Source of the DNA: Oopsacas minuta
Taxonomy: Eukaryota; Animalia; Porifera
Direction of reading: 5' to 3'
Assembly: GCA_024704765.1 (NCBI GenBank)
Contig: JAKMXF010000222.1
Location: 496,001-560,000 of the forward strand
Length of the DNA: 64,000 bases
Of this stretch, positions 819-59,262 are shown one piece after another. Both the position numbers and the translations under genes were made by a program. The notes beneath the pieces are model-generated. The model made no database searches. It saw only the letters and a list, made by a program, of their open reading frames with translations, and had not been told where the DNA came from. Positions within the stretch are counted from its first letter, which is position 1; each line of letters opens with the position of its first letter.

Positions 819-3800
819 GTATGGTATTACTGTATATGGATCTACAACACCTACAACTATTGCTTACATAAGTGGGACATCCTATTTCGGAGATGTTACA
901 CAATTCAATTCAGTATTGTCATCATATCTATCTCCTGGTACAGCTTCTACTGGTGCTACAACCTTTGAGAGTATTAACAGTATAGTAGAGAATTATGCAT
1001 TTAGAGATGGAGTGGATAGGGAGATCGTATTGATTGCTTCCGAGGTATATTAATTAGGTTATATAACTATTGAAACAATTACTCGCATAAATATTATAAA
1101 ATTTGGCCTAATAAATAACTCTATTTTAATATGCTTATATTTTCTGCTTTAGCTTCTCAGTGAAACAACTTCTTCTGTAATAAACAGCTATGAAAACATT
1201 TTATTAACATTATTACAAAACGAAATCACATTGAGCGTAATCACCAGAGGAATTGAATATTTCACTAGTGCATCTAGGGTTACCCGTTTAATAGGAATGA
1301 ATTTCCATAGCAATGTTGGTTTAGGTCAATTCTCTTATACTACTACTTGCACATCAGATCCCTATCAAACTACAACTACTCATTACGAAATTCAAACCGG
1401 TTATGAGATGAATTATAAGAGTTATGTAGAGCTTGCTTGGAATACGAACGGATCAAGTTATGATTTGTCTTATTTTGACGATTCAAGTACATATTGCTCT
1501 AGTCATGCATCTCAAGTATTCTATGACGGAACTATTCAAGTTGTATGTGTTCCTAAAGGTATTGCTATATTTATACTACAGTCGTACATATACTCGATGA
1601 ATTCGTACTTCGTCTTTCAGACCGAAAATTTCAGATTAGGCATACACTTGGATAGTACGCATTCCAAGGGATACGTCTTATCCGAATTCCTCTGTATTTA
1701 ATATATAGTTACAATCAAACTTAGGCGCAAAAAGTGGAAGGCCTAGGAAGTTTCCTCTTAGTGAGAATATGGGTATACGTACCCCAGCCCGCTCGACAAA
1801 ATTGAAATTCCGTGGTTGCTAACTTAGCCAACACCTCGCATAACTAACCCAAAATCACTATTATTTGGAGGCTTAAGGAAATTTCTGATGGCTATAACCA
1901 CCAAACCACCGGAATGTCGAGCACTGATATACTCCTCCTTTCAGTAACATAACGAGCATTGAGGCTTTGTGAATATAGAAATCATTATTTGTTCAAAAAT
2001 CTAATTCCATGCATAAATTCAGAATTCTATTATTATTGTAAGTTGCTTTTCTTTAGGAGATAGCTATTCTTACAGTTTGGAATCTAGTAACACCTACTAT
2101 ACTATGTGGAGTGATATTCAATCAGAAGACGTCTCTAATTGTGTAGATATGGTAATTCTCTTAGATCGCACTGGATCTATGAATTCCTATTTTGATAGTA
2201 TACATAATCTATCTAGTCAACTCCCTGAGGCTGGTAATAACTGTGATAACAGGTGGATGCTATTCTATAAATCGGTTAATATATATCTCGGAGAGCCGAA
2301 ATACGTAGTACGTACGATCCGGTAGTTCACTTTACCTAATTGAATTTACTTTATGCAAGATGTAATGAATTTTGGGTCATTTTCATACTACTTATTTGGG
2401 TAACCTAATTAAGATACAGGTAAGCGCACCAAATTTGATACTTTGTTGTACTAGAGTGCTGGGCTTTTAGAAGGGAACCATTTTATCGAATTTCAGTGGT
2501 GTGGTGCACACTCAGTTATATGTGCCACTTTGGGCACATTTATCTTCCCAAAATATTTATGCTAAAATGTCGAGAAAATTGTTAACATGAATAGTGTATC
2601 CTAAAACTTATGATTCATCTTGAAAAATAAACCTTTTGCATGAGGATAAACGATATTCTAAACAGTAAGAAGTCGGTTGATTGCCCCAAAGGATACGTGT
2701 GATAGTCTGAAACAATCAACCGATTTCCTAGTGTATGGAATATCGTTTATCCACTTGCAAATGAGTTTCTTTCAAGATTAAATCAAGATGTAGGTAAGAC
2801 ACACACTTCTAGTTAACAATTTCTCGACATCTATAAATATTTGGGTCAGTTACCGAGATCTACACCATACGATGAATGAATGAATTTATATAGCCACGTA
2901 TTATTAACAAAGCAGACGAAACATCGTGTATTCATGTCATTTATGTAAGAAATATGAAGAAAATAGATGGACCGCGATGTCTATCTAGTAAAATCGGGTT
3001 CTTAAAGAAAATTTAGAGACTCGGTGTGTGTGTACATAACTAGACTCAGCTAGCCTAGCGGCGACCAACAAGGGGTCACTCGATAGGGTTAGGAAAAACT
3101 TTGGGAATGCAATGTTTCCACATTCCTAAGAAATTCCTGTGTTGCTGCGGAAAAGACATTCACGAACATATTCGAGTGACCACTGAAACGACTTGAAATC
3201 TTTCACTAATTACGGATATCGACGCCAAAATTCAAACTGGATGAGTTATATGCATTTAAATACCTTCAAAATGTGTCCAAAGCGGCACATAAAACTGAGC
3301 GCACATCACACCCCTGAACTTCGATGAAAAGGCTCCTGGCTCGCCTTCAAAAGTTCAAGCACACCCTAGCGCAAATTGTACTAAATTTGGTGCTTTTTCC
3401 CGAATTGTTTCGATAATCGTCAAATTCGATGCTAACAGCACTGACTAATTATATTATTACGTGTTTTAGAATTATAGATTTTAGATAATATTGTAATAGA
3501 TTTTGTGCATTTTTTCAAACATTAGCGGCCAACACCCAAACAGGATACGCTATCTTACGAAACTTTATGTTTGTGATTTAGAAGTTGAATTTAAATCCCT
3601 CGTAATTCACGAGAGTTAAGTTCCTGAAATATGAAGAATTACAAACTGAACTGCGAGATTATTAACAAACTTAAATTTATAGGGAGCTTATTAAAATATG
3701 AATTCGCATTTAAGATTTGTGTTTAAATTTGTATTCAACGACTTGAAAGTAGTTAAGTACATATAAATATACATTCGTGGATAGTTACATATGTATTTTT

Positions 3801-6008
3801 CTAATTTAGATATGGCTTAACATTATTTCATGATGTTGTTGAGATAGTTAATTTGACTAGCAGCTTCTGGGGTACACCTACTCAACTGTCTAATGCTTTT
3901 GGATTCGCCCGCGTTGGCATCGATGAAGATGGATATTTGGGAATCAGTAGAATTATTGAATCGTACACTTTCAGAAGTTACGTGAAGAAGCACATTGTAT
4001 TATTCACAGATGAGGTAATCATTAAATTTTTTAAATGTTAATTGTTAGTATTTTATATCTAATTTTGTGGACAACTGTGAAGTAATTTATGCAGGTCACT
4101 AATTCAGATCATCTTCGTCTGATTTCATCTGAATCAAGATTCTTTTATGTTTATTACGATAAAAACTTAAAACCATGTTTAGCCAGGTTAATTAAGCGAT
4201 AAAATGATTCAACAAACAAAATGGGAAGTAAAATTAACAGTTTCAGGTTAAGTGTTTCTGGGTTGAATATTACAGATCGCATACATTACCACTTGTATTT
4301 CGGTTATAAACTTCTTTTTGGATAGGGAGTAAGGGGAGGCGAAGCGATAGTTCGGCACATGCGACATATGCTACTCCTACAATCAGGGCTCTCGAAAGAA
4401 GGGTGGGACATGTGAACAACTTTTTTACATTAGTTCAGCGTTCCGCAATTTTAATTTGTTGGTCCATTGCCTTTGTTAACCATAATTGGGAGAGAGTGAG
4501 ACCATTTACACCCAGTTGATTAGGGGATAGGACAAATTAATTTACAAATATTTTAGTGATTTTCCGAATATGAATTTGTTACGTATTGAGATACTGAGTA
4601 ATATTACCTCAAGATTTTTGGAAAGTCAGTTAGATGCTCCCTATTCGCATACTTTAGTAATTATTATATCAAATTTATAATTAATTATCTTACCAATGTA
4701 TTTTAGCCGAGAAGAATCGTTGACAGCTCTCTTACGAAATCTAGCACTAAATCTCTACTAGAATCCAATGAAATCACTTTCAGTATAGTGTCTGAGACAG
4801 AAGATTTCTATTACGACTTAAGTTCAACTCAAATCGAATATTTGGATGCTGTAGTTCAATACTCGAATGATATGATTGGATTTATTGGTTCCTCTTCTCT
4901 TCCTATAAATGTTGATGCCTATAATCCAGCATACTTAACTATACATGATAATGCTCAGCATGAAGATTATGTAGAGTTAGCTTGGAGTACTGACGGTGTT
5001 GCCTACAATATTGATTTCTACCGATCTTCATTTTATTATGATAGAAATTCAGCTATCTTCAATACTCTAATGTTCTCATATGAGAGTATGCCTAGTAAGT
5101 ATTTGTTAACGTATATATTCGTTTCAATTTACGTACATACGGCCGTTCAAACGTTACGTAGCATCATATTCCTTGTTATTAGATGTCTTTATTTCCTATT
5201 TAATCATTTTGTAATACAATAAAGGTATACCTGTATTTTAACACATTTCGTTAGAATTGTAACTAAGCTATAGCTACTATTTAAATAATGTAATACGCTG
5301 GCCTTCTATTTTTACTGAATTCTGTGACATCTACGGCCGTGTATCAAATAGGCAAGCGGCTTTCAATGTCTTTCACCCGCGGCCCCTATAACAATTTTGA
5401 TACTTACTGTGGACCTCCTCCCATAGACAGCAATATATCCTGTGGGCCCCAAGCAGTCGTCCGGTGACCAGCAAGGGTTCCATGGACCCCAGGTCGGAAA
5501 CCGCTGAAGTAGGCCATGGTATCAGTTCAGGCTACTTAAAAATTCAAACGCCATCCCTTATCCGGTGTATCCGCAATCCATATCATGACATCAAAATTTA
5601 TATAATACCGCATGGTTGGCTGCTTCCTCATTTGTATTATATTCGTAGCAGTCTATGTCTAAATATTCCGGAATAGTTGAATGTCCCACTTTTTAAGTGG
5701 GACAGTATGAAATGTATTTTAATTATAAATTATACTTGCAGGAGAGTATTATCTCACCTCAATCAGCTCATCTATTGTTGGAGTCAGAAACAATGCAATA
5801 CATTATTCATTTGCCTGTAAAACCAATTCTGTTGACAATACATCTATTTCCCTTATTTTGAATGGGGTATGGCATACTAACAATGATTCTAGTGAAATAT
5901 CTATAACAGCTGAGGTATGGACAACTACGCCAGGAGAGTATAACTTCATTTGTACAGCTAACAACTCTATAATGGGGAGTTCATGGCTTGGATCATTTAC
6001 TATACCTG
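819..6008 (+). other. Ectodomain unit 1: vWA-1 (first exon outside window) + vWA-2 + Ig-like 1
   Basis: vWA-2 has CVDMVILLDRTGSM...DEDG...FRSYVKKHIVLFTDE...YVELAWSTDG. Ig exon 5742-6008 has FAC...W...GEYNFICTANN. Confidence 0.8.
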
Positions 6009-9000
6009 GTGAGTTTCTTTGTCCTGTTAAATTTTGGCAGATACTATATACAGAAAAAGGGGTGGCATCGTTTCAAAAGTGGTCCAGAAGATAACGAAGA
6101 TGTATTACACTTTCCCAACAATTCATTTGAATACTTTATTTGGAACATGTTTATTCCCACAATTTGTATTGTTTAGATCTTTCTGACTCACCTTTCAGTA
6201 TATTTGCTCCAAACTACGTACCAGAAAACTCAGGGATAACATGTGATTCATATGATCTAACTTCCTGTATCGATCTCGTATTCATCATAGATTTTGATAT
6301 CATTTCTACCTACAGTAGTCTATCCAGAATTTCTGCCTTTATCGGATCATTAGGACAGTCTAATTGTGTTAACAGGTAAGTATATAATGCCGTGTTTTGT
6401 GTTTCGAGGTCGTTGGGCCATGATAATGGATTATAGTTGGCGCTTAGCATATCTAGCTGGGTTAAAATGTGGAGTGTATGCATAGGGCGTATTCACAAAT
6501 TTTTGTGACAGAGGCGGTGCTCAATCCCAATTATGACCGCTTTACAAAATCCTCGAGGAAACACTGATTAATTATAGTATAGCCTCTGAACAATGGACAC
6601 TTTCAAGTTCTAAATCAATTGTATAATTATTACCATATGATATTACCAAAAGGATTTTTCTTTGTTATTTGATAAATACTCTCTGTTACTTCATTACTTT
6701 AGATACGGTCTTACAGTATTTGGGAGTTCTAATGGTGTTTCTATTATTAATATAACAAGTTCCTCTCAATTCGGATCAGCTTCTGAACTACAGAATGCTC
6801 TGAATACAAATCTGTATTCAGGTTTAGTGCTAGCTTCATCAGATGCTTATGCAGCTATTGATGTCGCTATTAAGAATTACCAGTTTAGGAGTGATGTACA
6901 GAAGAAGTTTGTGCTAATAACTGATCGAGTGAGTTGTTAGTCGTAATTATGAGACCTGATGCTAAACCACACAAGACATCTCTAGTTCATGAAAACAACC
7001 TGTAAAATAATGTGGTTGATTGAGTCGAGTCCATATTCAAACGAGGGGAGGGTGGCGTTTATTCGGACCCCTAAAGTACTTACATGACTTCATGTTTCAT
7101 TCATTAGTCAGAATTATTCATAAACATAGATTGTATATACATGTAATATCTCCCCTATCTATTATTTAGTCACAAGCATCTGATTCGAACTACATATACG
7201 AGAATATGCTGCATTATATTCTACTAAATGACGTTATTCTGAGTGTATTCACATCTGCAGACATCTATACAACATCGTTACAGGACAGGTTGATTGGAAT
7301 GAGTGGTAGCAATAGAATTGGGTATGGAAACTATTCTTACTGCTCTTTAAGTCCTGATTCTATCTCTACAGTGTTCAATGCACAATATACAATAAATAAT
7401 GTCAATAAGCATTATGAATATGTTGAGCTGGCATGGACAACGGGTGGAGCTTCTTATGATTTGAGTTATTTTGATTCAGTTCAGTTCTGTTCTGGCATTA
7501 TTGTTGAGGTATTCTCATTCGCTACTTTAGCTGAAACACCTTGTGAATTCAATGGTAAGTTATTTACGAGTAACCAACTATTTTCATGAACTAATTTATT
7601 CCAGCTATCATACTTAAAATTTTACCCTAGTCGGATAAGACTTACACTCGTAGATTTCCCATCCCCTGGTTGTTAATTATTCGGATTGATATCTTAAAAT
7701 CCTTGAATTTTCCAATGAATTCCTTGGGTTTCTTTAGGTTGATCAATTTCAGATAGTTATCATTGTGGAATTGATGCGACATATTTCCTACATACTATAT
7801 GCATAAATATATTGTAGATATTATGAATCCCAATAAGAACTACATTAATACGTCCCAGGGGAGCATAAAACTCTTTGACAAATAATCCAAGGAAATTCTG
7901 GATATTTTAAGTCGAGTATACTGTAATTAAGTTCTGAATAATATATAATAAATTTAGTAGTTGACAAATTAACAGGATAATCTGGCAAAAACAGACTTTT
8001 GTAAATCCCTGGAAGGTTGGCAAGTCTGCACTCGGATAGTACGTACTGACGTACTCAGTTAGTACTCAGTTTTATCCGAATTCTAATTCTATTGACATTA
8101 TCAGACCTAATTGGATTGTTGTATGATTCAACAATTCCTTAATACACTCTTACAAAGGGATAAAACTTATGCAATAGACCACGCTTAATAGAGCCACCTG
8201 TAAATCGCAGGCCGTATTGACCTAAGACTACCTTCCATATTCTAATTTATTTGATAAACTCTGCTATCTAATTGTAAAATAAACAATAATCATACATAAT
8301 AATGAGCCTTTGGTTCGTTACTTCGCGATGAACTCTGCGCATTGCGCCTCGAGCTATTCAACAGACAAACAACAATTGAGATTTAATAATATTGATGTTG
8401 TTCACGATAACCAGACTAAGCATACTCGAGTATACCAGTATAGTCGTTGAAAGTATGATTCTACCTCAATTTTGAAATTTGTTTACTTTATATTCATAAA
8501 AACAACAATGAATTTACATATGATTAATCTAAAAGTGTGAAAATCGGATTCAGCATGTTTGATATGTTTAGTGAAGTTGAATTGAATTCTATCTACTTCC
8601 TTGATAAACACGATAAATACATAGTAATGAGACAATTTCAAAATTGCATACCGTAAATCCTTTCCTTGACAACGGACAAACAAACAAACAAACAAACAAA
8701 CAACAATTGTAATTTAATAATATGGATTAACTACTATGTTAATGAGAGCAATACAACTAATTCTGTATTTTATTAGTTGACAGTGATCAAATAATTTAGA
8801 GTACTCAAATAACTTAAGGCAGGCGGGCCAGATCCGGCCCAGGGCCGTAATTTGTCCACCCCTGGCCTGGTCCCAAAGTGACTGTATTAAACGGAGTCTA
8901 CTATACTCTATTATCCAAACATTTATTCAGCAGATGTGTCATGGCCCCAAATTTTCGAAATTACTCTTGCATATAATATTTCATTTTGCCTCGATTTTCA

Positions 9001-12000
9001 AAATGTTATCACCTAACAATCCCAATAATTACACAAGGTTTAACTACAAATGTTTCTAGCATATTCAAATAAATATTTTCTTTCTTACAGGTGAAATATA
9101 TTCTTACTCTTCAAAAGCTGAATTCTCTTATTACACAGAATGGAATGATATTATCTCTCGTCAAAACTCATCCTGTGTAGACATGGTATTTGTTGTAGAC
9201 AGGACTGGTTCTATGAGTAGTTATTATTCTGCAATAAATAACTTGGCTAACAATCTACCTACTAGTGGAGATTCTTGTCAGAATCAGTGAGTAGTGTATT
9301 TACCTATTTAGACTTATTCTCTATATTATATATAATTGTATACAGGGTAGTCCTCGCCGTTTTCCGGGGTTACGTTCCTGAGAATTGTCGCGAATGGCGA
9401 AATCGCAAACGCTAAGACGTTAGTTCAATGAGAATAGTGGGGGGTTACGTTCCTAGATTACAAAATGACAAACAATAAGTGATACTAAATATGATTGGAA
9501 TGTATAATTAAGAAATAATTATGAGTTTTTAAAAGGTTAATTGTATTCACTGAGTTATAAATATTACTTGTGTGAGCATAAGTGGGTAAGACTTGTATAT
9601 TTAAATAAGAGAAGTTTCTGTTTTCACGTGATTAGGATACCACAAAAAACTAGATATGTTGAATTAGATATTATGTCGAATGTAAGTGGGCTGTATATCG
9701 AGAAAAATACATTTTCGATATAGTAATGCATACAAAATACAAAATAAAAATTGCAAAATTTTCTACCAAAACAACACTTGGAACAAAAACCGCGAATATC
9801 GAGGATGTACATCGCGGATGGTAAAACGAGACACAAATATTTTCCGCTTGTAATCGACTCAGCGCACGGAAAACTCGCGAACCGCGAGGCTGCCTGTATA
9901 CGTAATTATTAGCTCACTTCTGAAATTTATAGACGAGCATTAATCGATCTATCCTAGGCAGGATCTAATTGGATAAATTCCTGAATTATTCAACATTAGT
10001 CAACTTATTAAAGAGTCAACAACAAAAACAGGGACAGCGCAAACAGTCAGACTATAGTCTGACCACTTTTTAGCAAGTCCTGTTCTATTGTATTGCCTGG
10101 TCTGACCGCTACTTTTCACCCCCCCGCCGCCGTTGAAGTCTATTTCTGCAGACGCATGTATTTCCGAATAACATCTAAAGGAACACGTTAATTTCAAAGG
10201 CATAACCAGAGCATTAAGCGCTCCTCGCATTTGTAATTGCGGTCCTTTCTTTTTCCAGATTGACATTACATTTGTATTAAAGATAATCAACACTGAATAG
10301 GGCCATTGCATATTCCGGAAATTGTTACATTTTCAACATCAAACCACGTATACACATGCTAATGTGAATTATCAAAAAGTGTCCCAACAACCACTTTTTC
10401 TGGAATTTTGGCAGAATAACAATCACCAGGTCCCGAACCTCAGAATAGGAGCGGGCTCTTTTAATGCTCTGAGTCTGAACATTACAGTACACATTTTAAT
10501 CGATATGCATGTACGGTATTATGTTGCAGTCATAATAAGATTCCTCTGACAAAAGCAGGGCTAAGGTTAATCTCTTACTGCCAGCTAAACCTTTGGATTT
10601 TTATATCCAAATGTGTAAAATTCGAAAATTTATGAATTGTGTAAAACCTTGCTCCCAAAATGTTACGATTCATTAAGGGATTAATCAGTTAATCATATTT
10701 CACTGATAATTTTGTCTATGTAAAGCTTTTCAGTGATCATGGTGACTGTATTGATCACCCACTATCATTATCAGGTTAAGTATTGATACATAGCAATATT
10801 TACTGAAGAAAGTGTTATTTGTTTATCTTTCGTTTAGATTCGGATTAGTTATATTCCATGACTCAGTAACTATGATAAATGTTGGTACAGGACAGTGGGG
10901 TACTCCAAGTGAATTATACGCTGCTCTGCTTACCTTCTCTACTTCAGGTCTTGATGAGGATGGATTGCAAGCAATTGACTATGTTATAGATCAATATACC
11001 TTTCGTAACAATGTTGTGAAGCATATCGTGCTTTTTGGAGATGAGGTGATTTAAAGTTTATAGATAATTCTTTGTCAAACCATCCAATGATTTCACCAAC
11101 TATCTTCGATTCTTTTAAAACTTTGCACACTGCAAGTTCGTTACTAGTCTATAGTGTCCTGAAAGTTACAACACATCCCAACACCTTTTTATGCCTAAAT
11201 ATATGGTATTGTGCTAAAAATTCGGAAACAGCTGAAGTTGGACCTGCATATTTACTACGATTGAAGGGGAAATTGTACATTGGGGAGTCTATTGGCCCGG
11301 TTGGCTTATTCATAGCATTCTATATACAAAGGCAATAAGTCCATTGAAGTTTTTGGAGCAGGAACAGCGCTCTATTGCTTTGAATGTATTTTAGGGAATC
11401 TTAATATTCTTATAGCAAAAATGGTACACTTTTTGCCGGTAAATGTATTAGTGGTATTAAACTATATACATAATCTATATCTCCAAATTTCATGACGAAA
11501 TGACATCATCAGATTGCGGTTTAGACAATTTTATTATCCAATATGTCCCATTTGGAAGCTCTATAAAGAGCCGAGTATAACACATGTCATTGAGTAGTAC
11601 GCATGTAGGTACACGTTTAACGAATCTGTATTAATAGACGTAATAAGTAGTCCAATTGATCAAACTTTGAAAAGTCTGTGAGACATTTCTGAGACATATG
11701 GCAACTCTTTTCTATAATATGTCCATAAACAACGCTCTCAGCACTTATGAATGACCCTTGGACACTATGATAAACACTATGTTTTTAATGGGAGGGTCCA
11801 TGGCTAAGTGATATTTGGGACACGAAAGAGTATTCCCTGTTCACTATAGGGATAAGTTTCTTAATGGGAGGTAGGTATTAATGTTAAAGCATAGGAGAAA
11901 ATCGGGACTTAAAAACGTGTCCCCAAGGCGGAGGTGTTCCCTAATGGATCTTTTACTGTATATTTAATTTAACAACTAATTGACCAATCGATCTGAATAA

Positions 12001-42000: not shown

Positions 42001-45000
42001 CGATATAGATAAGTTCGTGACAGTTCGTCCTATGCCATCACGGATATGTTATTTACTGTCATCAACAAAATCTTCAATTATCACCAATTCTGGCTGCTTT
42101 GTATTTTAGAGCAAATTGTCCAAATTAATTTATTTCTATCCAGTATAATCTAGTAAATACATACATACACAAGAGGACTGCCAAAATTCGTACTCCTTAT
42201 CAAGAGTAACGTCTTAACCGTGTTCGTATTAACAAAACTCTACTGTATTTATGTTTGTTTACTGTATTTTAGTTCCCAATGGCCTTCCTGTTAACTATAG
42301 TCTCACAGTTCAGAGTTCAGAATCAATACTTGTAGAGTGGGAGCGTTCTGTTGGTAGTAATATAGTACTAATTAGTTACAGAGTCGTTTATCAGGGAATT
42401 TTATTCGATACAATGCAATACACAGCTACTACGACAGATACAGATGTTATTCTGGAGAACTTGAGTCCATTCACAAACTACAGTGTGTATATAATTGCAA
42501 ATACTCCATCTAATAGTAGCCAAACTGATGTGAAAATCGCAACTACATTCCAATACCGTGAGTAATTATTTGCACTAACAGTTTGTACGTACTTCTAAAT
42601 TCAAGTAGTTAGATACAGTGAATGCCCATTATATTATATTACCCACTGAGAGTAGTAATACATGTCTTGTAACCTGCAAAAATATTCATGAATATATGAG
42701 TACCAATTTCCAAAGGATAGTGCTTATATCTGGCCTGTTCTAATATCCTCTGCTCTTATAACCGACATGAACTATATCAGGATTACCAACATAACACAAA
42801 AATCAAATGAATATATTCAACAAATTCTCTCTCCTTAGCTCCTACTGAGTCTCCACAGAATATCACTGCTATACCTGTAAACTCAACTACAATTCTCATA
42901 AACATGTATCCTCCTTCTGTTAACCATCAGAATGGACCCATTAGGAACTATTCAATATCCTATCAACAAGGAGAACAAGAAGTAACAACATTCATTATTC
43001 TTAATACAATGGGAACTTATCCACTTGAAATATCTAGTCAGATTTATGTATCTTCACTTCTACCATTCACCAACTATACTTTTACTATTTTTGCTACTAA
43101 TGATGCTGGTTCTAGTCCTAATGTATCTGTCATAGAAGGAACTAATCCAGCTGGTATGTTTAAATGTGTTTATATTTATGAGACACATTTTGAACCACAT
43201 GATAGACTTTAAATGACCTTATCTATGAGAGCAGTTATAAGATACATATCATATATTATGTTCTTCAATGATTTACACTCTCCTGAGAGTATGTATCTGC
43301 TTTATTTATATAATTCTTCTTGTAGCACCTTCTCAACCTCCTCAGAACATTACAGCTTACTCCAACAGTGCTACTTCTATAACTGTAGCATACTATCCTC
43401 CTCCCTATTTCTATCAGAACGGTATCATCACGAGATATCTCATAACAATACAAGGAACTCCATTTGATTCAGAATTGAAAGAAATATCTGTACCAGTGAA
43501 TTTACCTGTCTATCCATTGTCGGAAGAAGGTAGATATATCTTCACACAACTACACGCTTATAACACATACTCTATTAGAGTTACAGCTGTTAACAGTGTG
43601 GGAGCAGGTCCTACCAGTTCCCCTATTACTGCAACTACACTACAATCAGGTAATTAATTCCCTTAAACAAGATATTTACTGATTATTTTCTCTTAAAATA
43701 CAAAAATTAGTCAGTTTCACTGACACATCAGAAGTGCAACTCAAAGTTCTTTTCCATAAATTTCCTTTTAATAACATTTGTAATTAACCGCTTGGATTAT
43801 TCATTATTTTCCTGGATCTGTGAAATATGATTAATATGCATTAAATTCTTTAGATTGAATTTGTAAATTAAGAATATGGAATATCAACTTTATACTTTAT
43901 ACGTCTGATTACTCTTCTTGCCTTCAAATTTTCGGAATCACTCTAATAGCCTAGAGACATTCTGCTAAGAGTGGCATTTCCCTATTTCGTCTTATTTCTA
44001 TAAATTGCTTATATCAATGGTATTCTATTATTTAGCTCCTACTGAGTCCCCACAGAATGTTACAGCTATTCCTATAAGCTCCACTTCTATTCTCTTAACC
44101 TGTCTTCCTCCTTCTCCCACTCTACAGAATGGACCTATTCGAAACTTTACAATACTCTATTACTCTGAATGGAATTCTGATATCATTGAGACAGCATCAA
44201 TATTGATAGATTCAAGTGAATCCTATCCATTCATGTTGTTAAGTCCAATTGTAATATCTTCACTACAACCATACACCAAATATACATTTAGTATAATTGC
44301 TATTAATGATGCTGGAGAAAGTCCCAATGTTACAGTTACAACCAGAACACGCATAGCAGGTATATAGATATTTGTATTTGTGTTGTTTCCTAACATTGTT
44401 TGATTTCTGAATCTTTCTAGCTCCTACTGAGTCTCCACAGAATATCACTGCTACAACTATAAACTCTACTACAATTCTCATAAACATGTATCCTCCTTCA
44501 GTTAACCATCAGAATGGACTCATTAGAAACTATTCAATATTCTATCAACAAGGAGAACAAGAAATAACATTATTCATTATTCTTAATACAATGGGAACTT
44601 ATCCACTTGAGATATCTAGTCAGATTTATGTATCTTCACTTCTACCATTCACTAACTATACTTTTACTATTATTGCTACTAATGATGCTGGTTCTAGTCC
44701 TAATGTATATATCATGGAAAGAACAAATCCAGCTGGTACGTTTCCCAATTCTCATATGAATTTGTAGTTGGAGTTTGTTATAATTGTCCTTGTAAATAGG
44801 CACTATTTATTACTAAGAATATAATTTATTCATTAAAATTTCTTATCCAGCCCAACCTCGGTAATACGAACACTAATGAATGGTTAAAATTTGTATTGCA
44901 TTATCTGCATTTGGTATTAACTGAAGTTATATCAATTGAATAGCCATTGTAGTGGCTTAAATCAATTTTTGTAAATACTTCGCTGATCGTCTTATCCGAC

Positions 45001-48000
45001 ATTCGTATTAACCGTATACGTATTGTTCTGGTACATATGACCACCCCTGCATGATCGGTCCTTTGGACTAAATGTACAAAACCTATGAAGATTTGGTACT
45101 TGTAGTCCCTCCGTATGTGCCAGAACAGTATTAACGAGGTTCCACTTTACTTATACTAATTAATTATTTAATTTCATTTACAGATTCCGTACCAATCATT
45201 ACATCTCCCCTGTCAGACAAGGTGTTAAATCCTGAGCTTTCCTTAACATACATCGAGCAATTTATCTGTGAAGCTACTGGATATCCTCCCCCTACTATCC
45301 TCTGGTACTCTAATAACGAGCCTGTAACAACTGGAGCTACGCTTACCCTTACTACCAGTAATGTAACTGACGGGAAAGAATACGTTTGTCAAGCTGAAAA
45401 TGATTTGGGATCTGACAGCCGAATAATTATTATCGCCATTGACCCTACTGATATTGCCATTAACAATGTTCTGGATGATATTGCTATTGTCTTGGATAAT
45501 CCATCAGAATTTGATCCAAATCAAGTTGGCCCTATAACAATTTTAATTTCCAATATTCTTCCTAATATTACAGATATTGATATATCAGAAATTGATGGGG
45601 TAAAGGATACATTAGCTAATACAGCTGACATCCTTGATGATCTCTTTGATGTTATTACTGATAATGATACAGCTATTTCACTGGATGATGCAGGTGATAT
45701 AGTTAATACAGCTGGAGACATTATTAACAAAGATTCTGAATTAGAAGATATTTCTATTAACACAGATCTATCAACTCAACAAATTAATATGGTAATTGGT
45801 AAATAATGAATTATCAATCCGCGGCTATTATAGTTAAACTGAAACAGGGATGGTGAAAAAATGCAGTTAACAGCCAATTTTGCTGTTTGCTGTTAACAAC
45901 TACAATTTTCCAAGAAATTAACAATTTGATTTTGCAGTTATTCTAGCTTTTAAACCAACAATTTATTGCCGTTATAGCCTAATTCGAATTGCTAAAAACC
46001 AATTTGAACTCTTAATATAGGTAATATAGTATATAGATAGAGGCAGTAACAAGCAGTTCAAAATTTTTCAAGTTAACCTATGAATTTATATCAACCACCT
46101 ATGTTGGTCTTGTCGAAACCTGAACAACCTGATGGCCTAGAGATATGAGAGTTGAAATTTAAGTTAGCGATAGCTGTTAACACCACGAATGTCCTTTAGC
46201 TGTTTCCCTCTCTGGCTGAAGGGATCAATTAAGTCCTCAAATATATTCAAGAGGACGCAATTTTCATTACAGGAATCAAATTTGTAGATTATCGTGAAAA
46301 ATTTCTCAACGGCAATATTATTTTCATCGATCCCTACTTTTACTCACGTTACTGTATATGTACGTGTAATATTACGTACAAGCATTGTAACATGTTAGCA
46401 CAGTGTATCCGCTTAATATCATACCTATAGGCAAATGTTAATCCCTGTATTCTATAATCTGGGAAGTTTCCCGCCCGGGATAATCTGGGAATCCAATTCG
46501 TATGCGTTGTAGTATGTTAAAGTGCTCAGTACTAACTGGCAATACATGTAGACACATATGCAAACGAGTTTGTTCACACTGTTCAGTTATGCGTGCTACA
46601 CAGTTATATTTCCACGTGTTTCCTTCTAACAGATTTCCACTCTTAACCTTCAAACTTGAATTCAATTATCCGGGAAGGATACCAAGTCTGACCACATTAT
46701 TATGGCAATAACCGAGTTTTTTTATCAATGAAGTAACGAAAATGGTTTTGAATTAGAACTTTTTATGGTAATAAGCTGGTTATCCTATTAAGCGGTATGA
46801 TAATATACGGGATTCATTGTAATAATAGCTCAGGGGCCTAGAAATATTATACGTAGGATACATCTGTTGTTATAGATAGGTTGATTACCTGGCTATTATT
46901 GAGACCCAAGATTAGGACTGTATTTCAGTGGCTAATAGGTAGGCGGTTATGTACGGTTAATCGCTATAGTTTAAATACAATTAGAAATTTTAAATTTCAG
47001 ATCTATTATTGTGGAAGATATCATGTTTATATTTTGTTATCTGTAGGGCGGAATTGCAATTGCTTCAGATGCTTTAGTTATTGCATTACTAACTATTGAA
47101 AAAGTATGCCATAACCTAGGCCTGAATTACTTCAAAGATGCTCTTATTCAGGATACTTTTGTTGTCAATAGGACCCATGTGAATATCTATGGAGCTAATA
47201 TTCCTATCTCTAACCAATTAACTGATGAAACTTTTCCATTAAATGAGAATTCGGAAAATAATATTATTATTCCAGAAAACGTGATAAGAGACCTGGCAGG
47301 TGATCAACTTAGCATGAAAGTAAGTAATACTTTTGATTATTTAATTGAAATTCTATGTTATCAAACTATGCATTACAATACTATTAAATGCAATCAACCT
47401 TACTGCTTTTATGAAAATATGTCAAAAGTCTCGAGATTATATAATAAGAATATCATATCAAAGGAAACTTTTTGGTCTCACCAAATTCGGAATAGCGAGG
47501 GTTGACTGTGTGTATGTGTCTATCTTTCTTCTAGGTTGTCATGGCTATTGTTGGAAAGTACGGAACTAAAGATTCTAATATCCACGAAACTGGTCTCGAG
47601 CAAGATTCTAAAATAGTGACGATAGTTATACCTGGCCGTAACGAGAGTGTATCATTGGTAGAGAATGTATGTTACAATATTATTATTAATTATATTAATT
47701 AACAATATACACATACGACGAAATTTGATTAACGAATAAGTAGGAATTTGACCAAAAATGTAACCCCTTATGAGTAACCGGGCTAATCCAAGAAAATTCT
47801 GTCCACAAATCTAGCATTATTTTATACAACGATGGAACTACATACAGAGTGTGGCTTATCGATCATCCAATAAATGTATGTACTTTATCCTCTATAGCTA
47901 CCCAGAACTTGGACAAATTCCTATTCCAATAGTTTCTTTAATATGGGATTTGGATGAATATTGTGTGTATACAAAAACACTATTCATACCCGAATTTATT

Positions 48001-50583
48001 GTAAAGACAACTCTTATTCTGAATTTATCACTTAGGCTACGATCATTTTCAATTCAGCGTTATCAAACTATTCGACAGATAGGATTGGTACTTATCTTAT
48101 AGGCAATCTGTGGTCTATAAACGGAATTCAAACTATTGATACAGCTATTTCTACCACCAGTCTAGTTGTAGATCATTTCACTAGTTTTGTAGTGTTCGCT
48201 ACTCATAGCATCTCTCCTTCATCTTCTTTACTTCAATACTACCTGGATATTTCTAGTTACATTCTATCTGCTATTTCAGTATTGTGTTTGATATGTTCCT
48301 TGTTTCTGTTCATCTTTGCAGGCAAGAAAGGGTTTTTCAAGATAGAAATAAATATCTTATATTTCAATCTTTGTGTCGCGTTGCTTTTTTCCACTATACT
48401 ATTTGTATTATACGGATTGAAGCCTGATGTGATAGGAATAAGCGATCTTCTATGCAAAATAATGGCAGCTATAATTCATTATTCGTGTATTTTAGTGTTC
48501 GCATGGGCCTTTGCTTTTGCCATTTACATATCTTACAAAATCAAGTTTGGTGAGTTTTAGAAGTTGTTCTTCATTTCTAATAAATTTTACTGAACACATA
48601 TTTCATTATATATTTTCTTCTATAGGAATTAGAAAGAATCGAAAGATCTATCCTTACATTATTATTTTCGCTTGGATTCTTCCTATTGTGTTCCCAGTTG
48701 TAACCTTGGCAATAAAGCTAGATGTGTATGTTGACGTCACAAACCACTGTTTCCCATCTCTCACTGATTATGTTCTTATCGGGTTGCTTGCTCCTGTATT
48801 ATTCATTGCTGCAATAACAATCGTGATGGTCGTCATATTATCAATTGCATTCGTGGTTGTTAGGAAAAAGATAGAAAATGAATTAATTCGAAATGAAATC
48901 AAGCATATACTGTTGTCAACTACTTTAATGACATGTATTCTGACTATCCCATGGTTTACACTGGTAATATTCATTTTCACTGAGAGCCCAGTGATTGAAT
49001 GGACATTTGTACTTCTCAATGATACAGTGGGGATATTCTTCTTCATATTTATTGCATTGAGAATTAAAGAAGTTAGATTACTATTACTTTGCAAATCTCT
49101 GCCAAATGCAAATGAAACTGTAAACCGAGACGGCACGAGGCCCGACACATTTAATAATCCAATTTATGATGGTAATATACAGAATTTACCTGACACTATG
49201 GATGAGATATATGCTGAAGTAGCAGAGAAGTCTGGTTATGGTAGGTTAAATTCACCCACGAATGTTCGAATACCTACAAATTCGAATATTATTATTAAGA
49301 TGCTATTGTATATTTCTAACCATAGTTTTATAAGTAGTAACTGAATACATGTCACAATAAATTGCCTCCACTTAATTCGGACGACAATTCTCTAGGAAAG
49401 GATTTATACCCGATCTCCAGGCTATAGACATGGGCTTTGAAGTTCGGGTTGAGGGACAGACGACCGCAGGCCACTAGTGTTTACTAAACAATAACTACGC
49501 GTATATTAGATCAGTATTATACCATAGACATATTTATGTACCTAAAAGTAAACAAATATTCACAATATGTTGTTTATAATATCATATTCGGGCTCAGCAT
49601 ACTCAATTACCCCAGTATAGTCGTTGAAAGTATGATTCTACCCAAATTTTGAAATTTGTTTACTTTATATTCATAAAAACAACAATAAATTTGCATATGA
49701 TTAATCCAAAAGTGTGAAAATCGGATTCAGCATCTTCGATATATTTAGTGAAGTTTATTGAATTCTATTTACTTCCTTGATAAACACGATAATACATAGT
49801 TATGCGGAAATTTCAAAATTGCATACCGTAAACCCTTTCCTTGACAACGGACAAACAAACAAACAAACAAACAAACAATCATTGAGATTTAATAATATAG
49901 ATAGATACGCTATGGATAATTCAATGTTATTTTATCTTTGGGTATTATTTGCTAAGTATTTGTATTACTTGTATTTTATAAGACTAAGCGATCCACACAG
50001 ATTTTCAATGCTCCAGCATCCTTGGGATTTTATGTTCGACGTCTATAGTACTCTGTAAAGTAAAATTATTTTGTTAATTAGGTTCATAATTAGGATAATC
50101 TGTGCGCAACCACTGTCTCCCCATGAAGCCGTGGATATAATTTAACAAATTTATCACAAGCATGTATATTATATAGAAGTGATGGAGAAGGGAGCATATG
50201 AGAAGGAAGGTGAAAAATCAAAGGAGGCAGCCAGACACTTCAACCCTTATCAGGTTGATCCCTCTGCAAGCCCTTACTCCAATCAGATGTATGAGTCCGA
50301 TCTACCTCCTATATACGACTGCATAGCTGGTTGCCAGACTGGCAACCAAGGAATAAGTAACCCAATGTATGACACTAACCTCACCACTATATCGAATACT
50401 ATACACGAGACATCTACTGGAGGAATCAATAATCCCTTCTATGAATCTACTGCAGTTGAAGGTCATATTGAATGTGATTATGAAGAACTCTCTTATCCTA
50501 ACCCATTTGTTAGTGGAGAAGTTCCCAGTCCTATTCACCCTACTGGTACAAAGCTGGACAAGGAGAATCCAAGCGATGTATAA
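819..50583 (+). CDS. Giant multi-exon adhesion-class GPCR, 5'-partial, about 4,400 aa in window: (vWA-vWA-Ig)x5 - FN3x5 - Ig - GAIN/GPS - 7TM - Tyr-rich tail
   Basis: Hand-built model, all introns GT-AG and all phases compatible. Exons: 819-1044,1153-1558,2057-2252,3810-4014,4707-5094,5742-6008,6177-6375,6703-6928,7170-7554,9091-9286,10838-11045,12218-12611,13338-13598,14035-14233,15287-15518,15601-15988,16815-17010,17467-17680,27609-28017,29174-29446,29645-29849,30433-30673,31160-31568,31728-31923,32372-32480,32941-33301,33809-34075,34717-34909,35406-35631,36400-36778,36954-37158,37464-37680,37750-38128,41488-41730,42273-42557,42839-43153,43326-43649,44036-44359,44421-44735,45184-45791,47047-47319,47535-47666,48036-48549,48626-49240,50177-50583. 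Sum is 13,210 nt = 1 + 4,403 codons including the stop. The first exon starts in phase 2, so upstream exons lie outside the window. That it is one transcript is inferred from continuous phase and absence of internal stops. Confidence 0.85.
2420..3398. mobile_element. Non-autonomous foldback/MITE-like element with about 120-bp imperfect terminal inverted repeats and an internal palindrome
   Basis: 2420-2540 (taagcgcaccaaattt...gccactttgggcacattt) is the inverse of about 3260-3398 (aaatgtgtccaaagcggcac...aaatttggtgcttttt); about 2545-2850 is itself an imperfect inverted repeat. Ends are approximate. Confidence 0.6.
8304..8727 (-). mobile_element. Repeat family R1 (microsatellite-bearing, Helitron-like non-autonomous element), copy a
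   Basis: Shares a roughly 270-bp core (gtttactttatattcataaaaacaac...aaagtgtgaaaatcgg...ttccttgacaacggacaaac(aaac)n...tttaataatat(a/g)gat) with copies at 28340, 30746 (inverted) and 49568. Helitron assignment is inferred from A|TC start and terminal hairpin. Confidence 0.65.
9343..9896. mobile_element. Repeat family R2, TA-flanked CAG...CTG (pogo/Tigger-like) MITE, copy 1
   Basis: TA|CAGGGTAGTCCTCGCC ... GCGAGGCTGCCTG|TA; interior nearly identical to the inverted copy at 18070-18588. Confidence 0.7.
12720..13077. repeat. 13-bp minisatellite GCTAGTTAG(A/G)TAT, about 27.5 copies
   Basis: Counted directly: first unit 12 bp, 26 further full units and a partial; only one position varies. Confidence 0.97.
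16196..16315. mobile_element. Short pogo/Tigger-like MITE
   Basis: Perfect 13-bp TIR CAGTGCAACCTCG / CGAGGTTGCACTG, with TA on both sides. Confidence 0.75.
18070..18588. mobile_element. Repeat family R2 MITE, copy 2 (inverted relative to copy 1)
   Basis: Reverse complement of 9343-9896; explains the duplicated MYSLSYKYYLCEHKW... ORFs at 9541 (+) and 18403 (-). Confidence 0.7.
18682..18980. mobile_element. hAT-type MITE
   Basis: TIR CATAGGCGCCGAA / TTCGGCGCCCATG; 8-bp target duplication GTAAAGTG / GTAAAGTA (7/8). Confidence 0.75.
19658..20488 (+). CDS. Intronless orphan ORF (276 aa from the first ATG) nested in the GPCR intron on the same strand; MGAILS N-terminus
   Basis: 831-nt open frame in AT-rich DNA where random ORFs are short; globular composition; ATG at 19658 (the track starts at TTG 19649). 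No family recognised. Confidence 0.6.
   Translation: MGAILSFFRGMYTRNTLEPMTQMDIDRSLLEPISKGNIIHVGNENGEISEQLPETEQTVKDEDQKLITMYVHNALEKFLPSYDIDPFKDEEGRELYCSPFIAVMEVVKNNCIKLYPDLTGKFLTYSIQPPNYVLHVCINKANSQIVKFAYESTNRTNAGYDLSITAPFHTNNSAEGQPVLCDATYISSVLTGQDPISSILNALSKIHSDGSINNGFDGKDFDWYMDGNNLLNFAVSNSPQMNLFWEDDNLIENLQGSNVKLTGNSAKRVQLALKEV
20672..20849. mobile_element. pogo/Tigger-like MITE
   Basis: TIR CAGTAGAACGTTAGTTATCC vs reverse-complemented right end CAGTAGAACGTCAGTTATCC (19/20); TA on the left. Confidence 0.7.
22300..22834 (+). mobile_element. DINE-1/Helentron-like non-autonomous element
   Basis: (GGAC)n microsatellite near the end, terminal hairpin TTAGAGCA-tcttcagc-TGCTCTAA followed by an A run, three internal copies of G(G/A)TGTGAAAATATGATT(A/T)ATCA. 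Left boundary approximate. Confidence 0.5.
22974..24062 (-). CDS. Intronless multi-pass (about 7 TM) membrane protein nested antisense in the GPCR intron
   Basis: 362-aa ATG-initiated ORF with about seven hydrophobic spans, a basic first loop (RRRYK) and very short N-terminus; no rhodopsin DRY/NPxxY or secretin motifs recognised. Confidence 0.8.
   Translation of the reverse strand: MEGARALEASLIDDLILTVVPLPFCLLTLVLLIYYIRRRYKLYQEVKRVPREFLLLQSYQNYLKNLRIKCVITNFIILILIIEFADNMLFALTLLWVWILSFDLRAVETFGFLFNVGHYMFGIVTTLRLSLVPVLSFMMDFLWFVYMKNQYRYTMMKWIVYIVLRDLYILIASYLIDNGSPRMTLSDAEGYRLQFVCLTELSFAFISIFDFIQLVYYSRKFYLLLKSREKEIKLFYFDKKAYLDSKFIRLHFSIATVLVITALFFLTFGFAANLLMSMAMDSSNILVEWEYYISLGYLSIFGYILRPSLILYKLLINLNYLFICGVIVLKYFGDKKKLSKINEHIKPVMEDYRNSLYNNVKY
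24564..27051 (+). mobile_element. Full-length hAT DNA transposon (2,488 bp)
   Basis: Perfect 15-bp TIR TAGGGTTTTTAATCC / GGATTAAAAACCCTA; perfect 8-bp TSD ATCATGTT (24556-24563 and 27052-27059); clustered subterminal (A/T)TCCCGGGA motifs at both ends. Confidence 0.96.
24940..26833 (+). pseudogene. hAT transposase with BED zinc finger, broken by two frameshifts
   Basis: IWNHF...CNSC...STKGLHNHL...H (BED), LTLDEWTS, ITTDG (in the shifted frame just before 25629), CYAH, TRWSS, PATSVEAERAFS (hATC). Frameshifts near 25570 and 26265. Confidence 0.93.
28340..28730 (-). mobile_element. Repeat family R1, copy b
   Basis: Same core as copy a; (GACA)n; ACGAGCC-TTT-GGCTCGT hairpin at the left end. Confidence 0.65.
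29645..34075 (+). other. Ectodomain unit 4: vWA-7 + degenerate vWA-8 + Ig-like 4
   Basis: Same exon series, but the middle exon of vWA-8 is only 109 nt (32372-32480, YTAYSYSDGYDAIEFIVNNHPFETDYIKSIIVITEF). Ig has FTC...YEFLCIASN. Confidence 0.72.
30746..31010 (+). mobile_element. Repeat family R1, copy c (opposite orientation)
   Basis: Begins atctatattattaaatctcaatgattgtttg(tttg)n...; reverse complement of the core in copies a, b, d. Right end approximate. Confidence 0.65.
34717..41730 (+). other. Ectodomain unit 5: vWA-9 + vWA-10 + Ig-like 5
   Basis: Same exon series; YVALAWQSGG motif; Ig exon 41488-41730 has IECST...YSYICIAYN. Confidence 0.8.
38935..39073. mobile_element. Short CAGGGCCG-type MITE; related fragments at about 290-395, 22185-22225 and 30121-30215 (inverted)
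   Basis: TIR CAGGGCCGTAAGAAGCA vs CAGGGCCGTAGGAGCA; flanked by direct repeat CATTA; shared GCGAGCGCCGCAC and AAAAAATTATTGGT motifs among copies. Confidence 0.6.
42273..44735 (+). other. Five tandem fibronectin type III domains, one per phase-1 exon
   Basis: Each exon has AP..PP.N.T...S.....W/Y..P....G....Y......L.P.T.Y...V.A.N..G.S hallmarks; lengths 285, 315, 324, 324, 315 nt, all multiples of 3. Confidence 0.9.
45184..48200 (+). other. Membrane-proximal Ig domain followed by GAIN-like domain ending in a GPS-like motif
   Basis: FICEATGYPPPTILWY...YVCQAEN (I-set Ig), then an acidic helical segment, then beta-rich exons ...SKIVTIVI...LVEN|ATIIF...WSINGIQ...VVDHFTSFVVF immediately before TM1. 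Confidence 0.75.
48036..49240 (+). other. Secretin/adhesion-family seven-transmembrane region (2 exons, 76-nt intron 48550-48625)
   Basis: Seven hydrophobic spans with class-B2 signatures: NLCVALL (TM2), CKIMAAIIHY..L.FAW (TM3), AWILP (TM4), ECL2 Cys, ILTIPW (TM6), F.LLND..GIFFF...KEVR (TM7/helix 8). Confidence 0.9.
49568..49902 (-). mobile_element. Repeat family R1, copy d
   Basis: Same core and (AAAC)n; shares the ccagtatagtcgttgaaagtatgattctacc segment with copy a. Confidence 0.65.
50177..50583 (+). other. Last exon: cytoplasmic tail with NPxY/YxxPhi motifs and C-terminal PSDV
   Basis: Phase-1 join GGT TAT G|gtaggt...atatag|AA GTG ATG gives ...SGYEVMEK...; reads to TAA at 50583. Confidence 0.75.
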
Positions 50584-58326: not shown

Positions 58327-59262
58327 TTATACTTTTTTGCTGCAGGATTCTTTCGTTTTCAACCACATAAAATGCATCTTCTTCATGGTCTTGGGGTTAA
58401 GACCATGTTTTAACCAACTAATACATGCGTAACTTTTATTCCATTCGAGTATTTTTACTCTCTCATCGTGAAGATATTCTATATTAAGTGGAGCGACCCA
58501 AGATCCTAGAGCAGTATCATCATTATTGTAATGCATTAATCTCTCTGAATTAATTGTTAAGTATCTCACGACATCTTGGGTTATGATATATCCCGCTCCT
58601 GCTGGGTAAGGAAGATAATTTGGACACAAGAAATAACCAAATTCAGCCCACTTTCCAGTGGCTAGTATATGAGTATCTGAGTGAATATAACTCATTAGAA
58701 GTTTATTTGTTGGAATGTTCACATTTGTGAGAGCTTTAAGCAAGTTCTCAATGAAAACGTAACAATCATCATCAGTTTTGATATAATATGCTGCATCTAT
58801 ATGCTCTCCTGCCCATACAAATCCTTTGAGTACTTTCCTAGATAGCTTAGTAAACTTCTCCTCTATACCAGATAATATCAAGATATCTCCATACTTAGCT
58901 GTTTCCTCCTGAACAGCAGTCATGTTTGCTTCTGTTACTCCAATGTCACCAATTATAAACGAGTATTTAACATAATGGTATTGACTGGCTGTATACCCCC
59001 ATGTGTTTCGTATTTCTTGTCTTCGAAGCCAATTATGTGGAGCACTGAGTATTTGAATATATAAAAGGTATGGCACTTTTCTATTTGAAAATGGTTTAGA
59101 AACTTTTCTATTTGAAATTTTTTTACTTAATTTATAGCAATCTAAATCTTTGTTAAAAACATCAATACTAGATTGATTGACATAATACAATGACATGTAC
59201 AATGTTTCAATTGTTATTAGAATTATTAATAAATATATACATTTTTCTAAATTAACAATCAT
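58327..59262 (-). CDS. Beta-1,3-galactosyltransferase (GT31), B3GALT6-like, intronless
   Basis: Type II N-terminal TM; ILSAP.N..RR..IR.TW; LSRKVL; YIKTDDD (DxD); YPAGAGY; DDTALGSWVAPL...HD.R, which resembles the EDVSLGAWLAP motif of B3GALT6. Orthology not established. Confidence 0.9.
   Translation of the reverse strand: MIVNLEKCIYLLIILITIETLYMSLYYVNQSSIDVFNKDLDCYKLSKKISNRKVSKPFSNRKVPYLLYIQILSAPHNWLRRQEIRNTWGYTASQYHYVKYSFIIGDIGVTEANMTAVQEETAKYGDILILSGIEEKFTKLSRKVLKGFVWAGEHIDAAYYIKTDDDCYVFIENLLKALTNVNIPTNKLLMSYIHSDTHILATGKWAEFGYFLCPNYLPYPAGAGYIITQDVVRYLTINSERLMHYNNDDTALGSWVAPLNIEYLHDERVKILEWNKSYACISWLKHGLNPKTMKKMHFMWLKTKESCSKKV

Follow-up and report, generated by a model that had tools for sequence, protein, structure and literature searches.

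Whether one gene for a giant adhesion G-protein-coupled receptor (GPCR), or two separate products, accounts for the long series of exon-like segments at positions 819-50583 is the question raised by the 64,000-nucleotide stretch of the Oopsacas minuta (sponge) genome analysed here (contig JAKMXF010000222.1, positions 496,001 to 560,000 of the forward strand; hereafter the window). What a cell attaches to is set by the outer arms of its adhesion GPCRs, and sponges stand near the base of the animals. The modelled protein consists of five consecutive units of two von Willebrand factor A-like modules and one immunoglobulin domain (vWA-A, vWA-B, Ig), followed by five fibronectin type III (FN3) domains, one I-set Ig, a GAIN-like region, a GPS motif, a seven-transmembrane (7TM) part of the 7tm_2 family and a cytoplasmic tail with three NPxY motifs. 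It is considered likely that 819-50583 contains, apart from its 5′ end, a single expressed gene which encodes a giant adhesion GPCR of putative function, and the gene structure and the domain identities described below are regarded as very probably correct. Repeated vWA-vWA-Ig units plus five FN3 had been claimed in an earlier reading of the letters alone (the original prediction), and this layout was borne out with five units, ten vWA modules and five FN3 exons, the coordinates of which are collected in Table 1.

The window is AT-rich (G+C 33-39%) and its plus strand carries many short stop-free segments that recur in a fixed order. These segments were joined via frame-compatible GT..AG sites, with the repeat pattern deciding among candidates, and as frame compatibility was required of the sites the fit of the open frame is partly given by construction. 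The initial model had 44 exons coding for 4,358 aa and 43 introns of 61-9,928 nt (median 496), all of them GT..AG. Exon 47535-47666 was added after a translated comparison of every intron against related loci; it has a strong acceptor, a GT donor and phase 0 on both sides, and splits one intron into two GT..AG introns. No further collinear conserved blocks were found in the introns by this comparison, the other matches being dispersed repeats or an unrelated ORF (open reading frame). The final plus-strand model runs over 45 exons whose 13,209 coding nt translate into 4,402 aa, its sole stop codon lying at 50581-50583, and it agrees with the approximately 45 exons, approximately 4,400 aa and both end coordinates that had been predicted. 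The intron phases are identical in all five units, being 2 from exon a to b, 0 from b to c, 1 from c to the next module and 1 from Ig to a, and since the phases were not imposed by construction their repetition gives independent support to the model. In BLASTP, individual bacterial proteins, which are unspliced, align without a break to exons a, b and c of one module, and the splice joins within modules are thereby confirmed. The 5′ end of the gene is upstream of the window and the model begins inside the first vWA module (A0), whose exon a precedes the window. At a related locus, L007, exon a of the A0 counterpart lies about 1.7 kb upstream of exon b, with no additional vWA exon in the preceding 7 kb, and the module count of ten is therefore probably complete.

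The stretch is present in four runs of one sample, and joints were inspected over 37440-43400. Run X4 is RNA-like, with an exon depth of 800-1000 and an intron depth of 4-16, and its five spliced joints fall exactly at predicted junctions (37680>37750, 38128>41488, 41730>42273, 42557>42839 and 43153>43326); a loose end in the same run connects exon a of module B4 to its exon b (37464). The joint 38128>41488 connects the last vWA exon to the Ig4 exon over a 3,359-nt intron, so that spliced RNA crosses the vWA/Ig4 boundary within the interval 38128 to 45184, in which a break between transcripts had been named as the test of the single-gene claim. Another joint, 38135>41494, was seen in runs X1 and X3; it is non-canonical (GT..TC), skips 3,358 nt, one base less than the X4 intron, and is probably an effect of the 30-letter overlaps between assembler contigs. 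It could be argued that the stretch gives two products, a secreted or separately transcribed vWA-Ig rod (819-38128) and a separate FN3-Ig-GAIN-7TM receptor beginning within or beyond the 3.4-kb gap, with the joined form as rare read-through, as only one intron is longer than that of 3,359 nt, which is placed at a change of domain type, and as vWA-Ig proteins of other sponges are without a 7TM nearby (locus L001 and the Pfam lists). However, the joint in X4 is canonical and its depth of about 1050 equals that of the flanking exons (820-1000), while the low depth in the intron shows no exon-like peak. The intron is also without a conserved block, and the distance from the last vWA exon to the Ig exon is only about 500 nt in the related locus L003. 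A division into two products is on these grounds very unlikely.

The single gene reaching from vWA to 7TM, as had been predicted, is further upheld by collinear loci in other assemblies. In L003/L004 (ENA ERZ20067936) and L006 (ERZ25069837), vWA, Ig, fn3, Ig_3, GAIN-like and 7tm_2 exons are found on one strand within 20 kb and in the order of the window. The placing of the long adhesion-module ectodomain on the 7TM chain is thus given by RNA joints from vWA through Ig4 to FN3, and by frame and collinear loci from FN3 to 7TM. The distal units are matched exon by exon in L005 (ERZ25071281) and L007 at 46-75% identity, and an orthologue of the B2 intron, the longest in the model, has 3.6 kb at the equivalent position. 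Directly after the TM (transmembrane) exon of L008 there is an ORF 55% identical to the last exon of the window. L005 and L007 are 83-94% identical in exons but their introns are unalignable, which makes them separate species or copies. Treating L005 and L008 as one gene was rejected, as they are about 99 kb apart on one contig and a tandem paralogue could intervene. Protein collections contained only single-exon fragments of related copies and none from this genome, and a search with the 91-aa GAIN exon gave two orthologous genomic fragments only and no spliced ORF from RNA assemblies. Giant many-exon receptors which appear in protein collections as single-exon fragments of related copies would consequently be missed by surveys of domain architecture.

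The receptor core was identified by Pfam, profile and structure searches. Both TM exons match 7tm_2, with E-values of 1.2e-5 (profile positions 4-105) and 1.8e-6 (profile positions 84-249), the hydrophobic spans total seven, and Atlas gave 0.95 to 7tm_2 clusters for the TM4-7 exon. PDB matches of the TM part are ADGRL3, ADGRD1, ADGRG6 and ADGRE5. Exon 48036-48549 aligns with the ADGRL3 chain 8jmt_A from the GPS region through TM3 (E 6e-9), and W, G, H-x-T-x-F and the region of the tethered peptide are conserved in this alignment. The class-B2 7TM core of the original prediction is confirmed by these matches, and its GPS-like motif is seen in the alignment. The four GPS cysteines are replaced in this exon, the motif being H-F/T-S-F and the peptide T-S-F-V-V-F-A, and HFTSF is invariant across three loci (the window, L003 and L006). 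Upstream, exon 45184-45791 matches Pfam Ig_3 (4.5e-10) and also I-set, and its AlphaFold model shows an Ig beta sandwich followed by four helices (predicted local distance difference test, pLDDT, 81). Foldseek matched only the Ig part of this model, and GAIN subdomain A was not confirmed by fold. Between the four helices and the cleavage motif there are about 183 aa of beta-rich sequence, which is a normal size for GAIN subdomain B, and the region before the GPS, split over four exons, is regarded, short of proof, as GAIN-like. All five FN3 exons match Pfam fn3 with E-values of 2.5e-8 to 8e-15. The five Ig exons of the units are weak in Pfam; when a profile of these exons and their orthologues was run against the PDB, nearly every match was a chain of the Ig superfamily (best E 8.6e-4), including MuSK, RPTP sigma and delta, Robo, contactin and DSCAM. 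At the other end of the core, a C-terminal S-D-V had been proposed as a PDZ-binding motif, and the letters at 50560-50583 do encode it, but the corresponding end in L008 (12590-12615) is Q-D-I, so that an S/T at position -2 is not conserved.

The identity of the repeated modules, each of about 265 aa and three exons, was approached from single exons, from spliced modules and from relatives. A profile of the a exons gave weak matches in the PDB, nearly all of which fell on the beginnings of vWA or I domains. The profile of the ten c exons had 39 matches among 1.84e9 representative proteins, none of them a full-length model. Nearly all were single-exon fragments of 69-178 aa from sponge-associated assemblies, and the exceptions include the Sycon ciliatum protein P0039 and the VWA_2-positive protein P0037. 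A hidden Markov model (HMM) built from the ten modules after splicing, whose E-values were calculated for 1.84e9 sequences, matched P0042 (3e-44), P0043 (1e-38), Sycon P0039 (5e-20) and Okeania P0053 (6e-16). These matches extend over almost all of the module and include the Pfam VWA stretches of P0042 and P0043, both of which have a Pfam VWA match of 1.1e-11 and the latter also an I-set Ig. In the alignment the exons of the window are in register with the signature of the subfamily, which is D-E-S-G-S-M, Y-G-L-V-G-F-G, E-D-G-Y, T-D-E-D-R-D and G-G-A-A-W-D-L. Residues 10-270 of P0043, the nearest intronless relative, were modelled by AlphaFold with pLDDT 91 and a predicted template modelling score (pTM) of 0.90. 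The model is an alpha/beta fold around a central sheet with the strands and helices in vWA order and a beta-rich insert after strand 5, before the last helices. The best 50 of 500 Foldseek matches of this model in the PDB were all vWA folds at probability 1.00, among them BatB, the integrin beta I-like domain, LapA vWFA, collagen VII and VWF A1, at identities of 14-18%, and the Atlas look-alikes are vWA clusters. The modules of the window are, judged from profile matches and a modelled relative, a divergent vWA subfamily with a predicted beta-rich insert, and their designation as vWA-like in the original prediction is supported by the HMM matches to Pfam-VWA-positive proteins and by the fold predicted for their nearest relative.

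Within a length filter that leaves larger proteins out, P0039 and P0043 have among their relatives P0042, further proteins from Sycon and Corticium candelabrum that carry Ig, EGF or LamG domains, two from diatoms and many bacterial PEP-CTERM or autotransporter proteins, some of which are named VWA domain-containing. There were no named bilaterian or cnidarian proteins among the 96 matches, and the closest named relatives of the modules come from sponges. In the searches made the subfamily occurred in sponges, diatoms and marine bacteria only.

The history of the array can be read from the likeness of its modules. Identity within a type is 30-47%, and that between A and B is 20-33%. A tree of 79 modules unites the nine complete ones of the window in one clade (support 99), which is split into A (95) and B (94), and keeps the window, sponge-like and bacterial groups apart; the tree is unrooted and gives no direction of transfer. 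Positional orthologues are 55-75% identical, compared with 20-47% between modules, and because positional orthologues are more alike than neighbouring modules the array of five units is older than the split of the taxa and each position has been kept. By these comparisons, types A and B go back to a duplication, after which the A-B-Ig cassette underwent a five-fold multiplication, all of it earlier than the divergence of the related species. A younger event is suggested in the FN3 region, where exons 2 (42839-43153) and 5 (44421-44735) are 94% identical in DNA over 326 bp compared with 23-52% protein identity for other FN3 pairs, and where a recent duplication or gene conversion may have taken place. 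RNA word depth is several-fold higher at these two exons, as is expected for shared words.

The metal-site motif is unevenly retained in the array. Modules B0-B2 keep D-R-[TS]-G-S, E-D-G and T-D-E, as do their orthologues, and the A modules are mostly degenerate at this motif. The consensus of the wider family, D-E-S-G-S-M, is a perfect D-x-S-x-S motif, and the threonine position of the metal site is E-D-G throughout the subfamily. One could regard the locus as a decaying or non-functional repeat array that stays open by chance, given that B3 is truncated, that several metal-site motifs are degenerate and that there are transposon remains in the 9.9-kb intron. This view is hardly credible, since the frame is intact over 45 exons, the RNA is spliced at high depth and the truncation is common to an orthologue, the B3 exon b of L006 being likewise of half length. 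Moreover, dN/dS (the ratio of nonsynonymous to synonymous substitution) against the related loci is 0.17-0.29 in the vWA-A, vWA-B, Ig, FN3 and GAIN-7TM parts, rough values with dS near 1, which indicates purifying selection in all domain classes.

Compared with known systems, the protein is closest in its core to adhesion GPCRs such as ADGRL3 (latrophilin-3), ADGRD1 and ADGRG6. It shares with them the 7tm_2 core, the W..G..H-x-T-x-F motif directly before TM1, a Stachel-like peptide and a long modular ectodomain that includes Ig and FN3. It differs from them in its ten vWA modules and in a GPS that is without the four cysteines and without a Pfam GPS/GAIN match. In a survey of demosponge adhesion GPCRs the domains were EGF, fn3, GPS, HRM, Ig types, SRCR and others, with no VWA (PMC4302439). 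Literature searches for adhesion GPCR or 7tm_2 together with VWA found no vWA-bearing adhesion GPCR, although absence there is not proof. Neither a 2026 adhesion-GPCR review nor a 2025 survey covering the GPCRs of animals and of the lineages related to them mentions VWA, and the glass-sponge genome papers describe no such receptor. The predicted novelty of an adhesion GPCR with a vWA-vWA-Ig rod is in line with the literature searched. The layout of the ectodomain is new within a known receptor class, and it is expressed and conserved; domain shuffling is expected in adhesion GPCRs, which tempers the surprise.

Collagen VI and matrilins also have vWA domains arranged in tandem. Integrin beta I-like domains have a vWA fold with an insertion and are among the best structural matches of the P0043 model, but the window protein is without the PSI, hybrid, EGF, collagen helix and coiled coil parts found in integrin beta, collagen VI or matrilin. 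The demosponge aggregation factors are also extracellular sponge proteins with tandem vWA arrays, repeated exon cassettes and biased intron phase, and one of them, AqAFB, has a signal peptide, two Calx-beta, six VWA and a Wreath domain (PMC5400394). In contrast to the window protein they are secreted, carry Calx-beta and Wreath and encode each VWA domain in a single exon; none turned up in hexactinellids (PMC5400394). The window protein is a 7TM receptor, a layout incompatible with theirs, and its vWA modules have three exons; Calx-beta had no Pfam match on the scanned exons, and Wreath was not searched for. The same vWA subfamily, in tandem modules followed by Ig, is present in uncharacterised vWA-Ig, vWA-EGF and vWA-LamG proteins from Sycon ciliatum (XP_065179370, LOC135817800) and from Corticium candelabrum (LOC134182141) and in P0042 and P0043, the latter two aligning, at E 1e-21 to 1e-26, across a vWA, a linker or Ig and a further vWA. 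These relatives differ in having 640-1,300 aa and no 7tm_2 Pfam match among those listed. The nearest full-module relative of the window units is found at L001 in a different eukaryotic assembly (ENA ERZ25072854), where positions 8985-12325 hold an intronless 774-aa ORF (vWA, cysteine-rich linker, vWA, I-set Ig) after a 330-aa vWA ORF, and no 7TM gene is nearby. Bacterial vWA surface proteins (PEP-CTERM in Okeania; autotransporters in Amphritea and Oceanimonas) have one module of the same subfamily, which is alignable over its whole length and 30-42% identical to the sponge relatives. They differ in being limited to a single module, in their PEP-CTERM or autotransporter anchors and in forming a separate group in the tree.

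Ten vWA modules, with the fold of integrins and collagens and its metal-dependent binding, on a GAIN-7TM core would link adhesion to G-protein signalling in a new way. Because the metal-site residues are retained, B0-B2 may bind ligand cation-dependently, by analogy with the vWA domains of integrins and collagens, with the A modules as probable structural partners. With ligand so captured, a pull on the bound arm, or the engagement of ligand itself, would be transmitted via the FN3 stalk to the GAIN-like region, where the tethered peptide after H-F/T may become exposed and activate the 7TM part, giving G-protein signalling as in other adhesion GPCRs. This activation scheme is a best guess because the receptor core and the tethered-peptide motif match those of that class, and metal-dependent binding together with the force mechanism is a tentative proposal, drawn from analogy, that we would not rate as probable. 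If the gene were instead to carry its vWA array as a passive spacer or oligomerisation rod, ligand recognition would reside in the Ig or FN3 domains or in the unseen N-terminus. Seven of the ten modules have no intact D-x-S-x-S (A0, which is not assessable, the other four A modules, B3 and B4), the subfamily has E-D-G at the position of the classical metal-site threonine, and the vWA arrays of collagen VI and matrilins have largely assembly roles. The motifs kept in B0-B2 and their orthologues and the perfect family consensus argue against a purely passive array, which is less likely than not but deserves serious attention.

The same gene might also serve as a receptor for self/non-self or microbe recognition and not as a matrix or mechanical sensor. 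The nearest non-sponge relatives of the modules are marine bacterial surface proteins, and the aggregation factors of demosponges, which use VWA domains in tandem, have not been found in hexactinellids (PMC5400394). However, the dN/dS of about 0.2 and the position-by-position orthology speak for conservation and not for the diversification expected of allorecognition genes, and such a role is improbable. A wider scenario would be that the vWA subfamily was exchanged between marine bacteria and early sponges, and that glass sponges wired the array to a GPCR, so that one chain would unite an integrin-like, cation-dependent hold on a surface ligand of matrix, self tissue or microbes with G-protein signalling and take the place of the aggregation factors; this is a speculation, and rather an improbable one.

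Several points weigh against a single receptor with vWA modules and the mechanism proposed for it. With regard to the modules, single vWA exons have no Pfam VWA match, the profiles of exons b and c had no match in the PDB above chance level and none to vWA, and the fold and Pfam evidence comes from the relative P0043 and not from whole modules of the window. The metal-site motifs of B3 and B4 are degenerate in this genome. Pfam GPS and GAIN gave no match on the scanned exons, and as these profiles are silent and the four GPS cysteines are absent, self-cleavage is uncertain. As for the continuity of the gene, the RNA covered 37440-43400 and the joints from 43649 to 50177, that is from FN3 to 7TM, rest on frame, phase and collinear loci, and the RNA joints derive from short assembler contigs of one run, with no single long transcript. 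The ligand and the steps of binding, cleavage and signalling in the mechanism are all inferred. The layout of the receptor recurs in several related assemblies, the gene is expressed, and its modules are of a size suited to protein expression.

Table 1. Exons and domains of the giant adhesion GPCR gene model, in window coordinates.
Feature	Position	Strand	Evidence or remark
vWA-like module A0	exons b 819-1044, c 1153-1558	+	exon a upstream of window
vWA-like module B0	exons a 2057-2252, b 3810-4014, c 4707-5094	+	D-R-T-G-S motif
Ig0, Ig-like exon	5742-6008	+	Ig-exon profile
vWA-like module A1	exons 6177-6375, 6703-6928, 7170-7554	+	DxSxS motif degenerate
vWA-like module B1	exons 9091-9286, 10838-11045, 12218-12611	+	D-R-T-G-S motif
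Ig1, Ig-like exon	13338-13598	+	Ig-exon profile
vWA-like module A2	exons 14035-14233, 15287-15518, 15601-15988	+	
vWA-like module B2	exons 16815-17010, 17467-17680, 27609-28017	+	D-R-S-G-S motif; 9,928-nt intron inside
Ig2, Ig-like exon	29174-29446	+	Ig-exon profile
vWA-like module A3	exons 29645-29849, 30433-30673, 31160-31568	+	
vWA-like module B3	exons 31728-31923, 32372-32480 (short b), 32941-33301	+	metal-site motif degenerate
Ig3, Ig-like exon	33809-34075	+	Ig-exon profile
vWA-like module A4	exons 34717-34909, 35406-35631, 36400-36778	+	
vWA-like module B4	exons 36954-37158, 37464-37680, 37750-38128	+	RNA joint 37680>37750
Ig4, Ig-like exon, after 3,359-nt intron	41488-41730	+	RNA joints 38128>41488, 41730>42273
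Five FN3 exons	42273-42557, 42839-43153, 43326-43649, 44036-44359, 44421-44735	+	Pfam fn3
I-set-type Ig, then four predicted helices (likely GAIN subdomain A)	45184-45791	+	Ig_3; AlphaFold
GAIN-B-like exons	47047-47319, 47535-47666	+	conservation
End of GAIN-like region, cysteine-free GPS motif (H-F/T-S-F), Stachel-like peptide, TM1-3	48036-48549	+	
TM4-7 and beginning of cytoplasmic tail	48626-49240	+	7tm_2
Last exon: cytoplasmic tail, two of the three NPxY motifs, stop codon	50177-50583	+	55% identical ORF in L008

The long intron of module B2 (17681-27608) holds further features. A 279-aa ORF on the plus strand (19649-20485), which has no Pfam match, may be a nested or mobile gene, and a homologous ORF beginning with M-G-C-K is found upstream of the orthologous gene in L007 (28-873). 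A decayed hAT transposon lies in three frames at 24940-26830 on the plus strand, with zf-BED (2.7e-8) and the hAT dimerisation domain (1.7e-8), and a 362-aa minus-strand ORF at 22977-24062 adjoins these remains. Short dispersed repeats are found in introns at 8283-8447, 9365-9843, 28235-28480 and 49762-50055, with a translated L-R-F-N-N-I-D motif or non-collinear matches in related loci. Downstream of the gene, minus-strand ORFs encode a Tudor domain (51649-52800, 5e-21), a galactosyltransferase (58330-59262, 6e-34) and a DDE transposase of the Tc1/mariner type (59957-60991, 7e-7).

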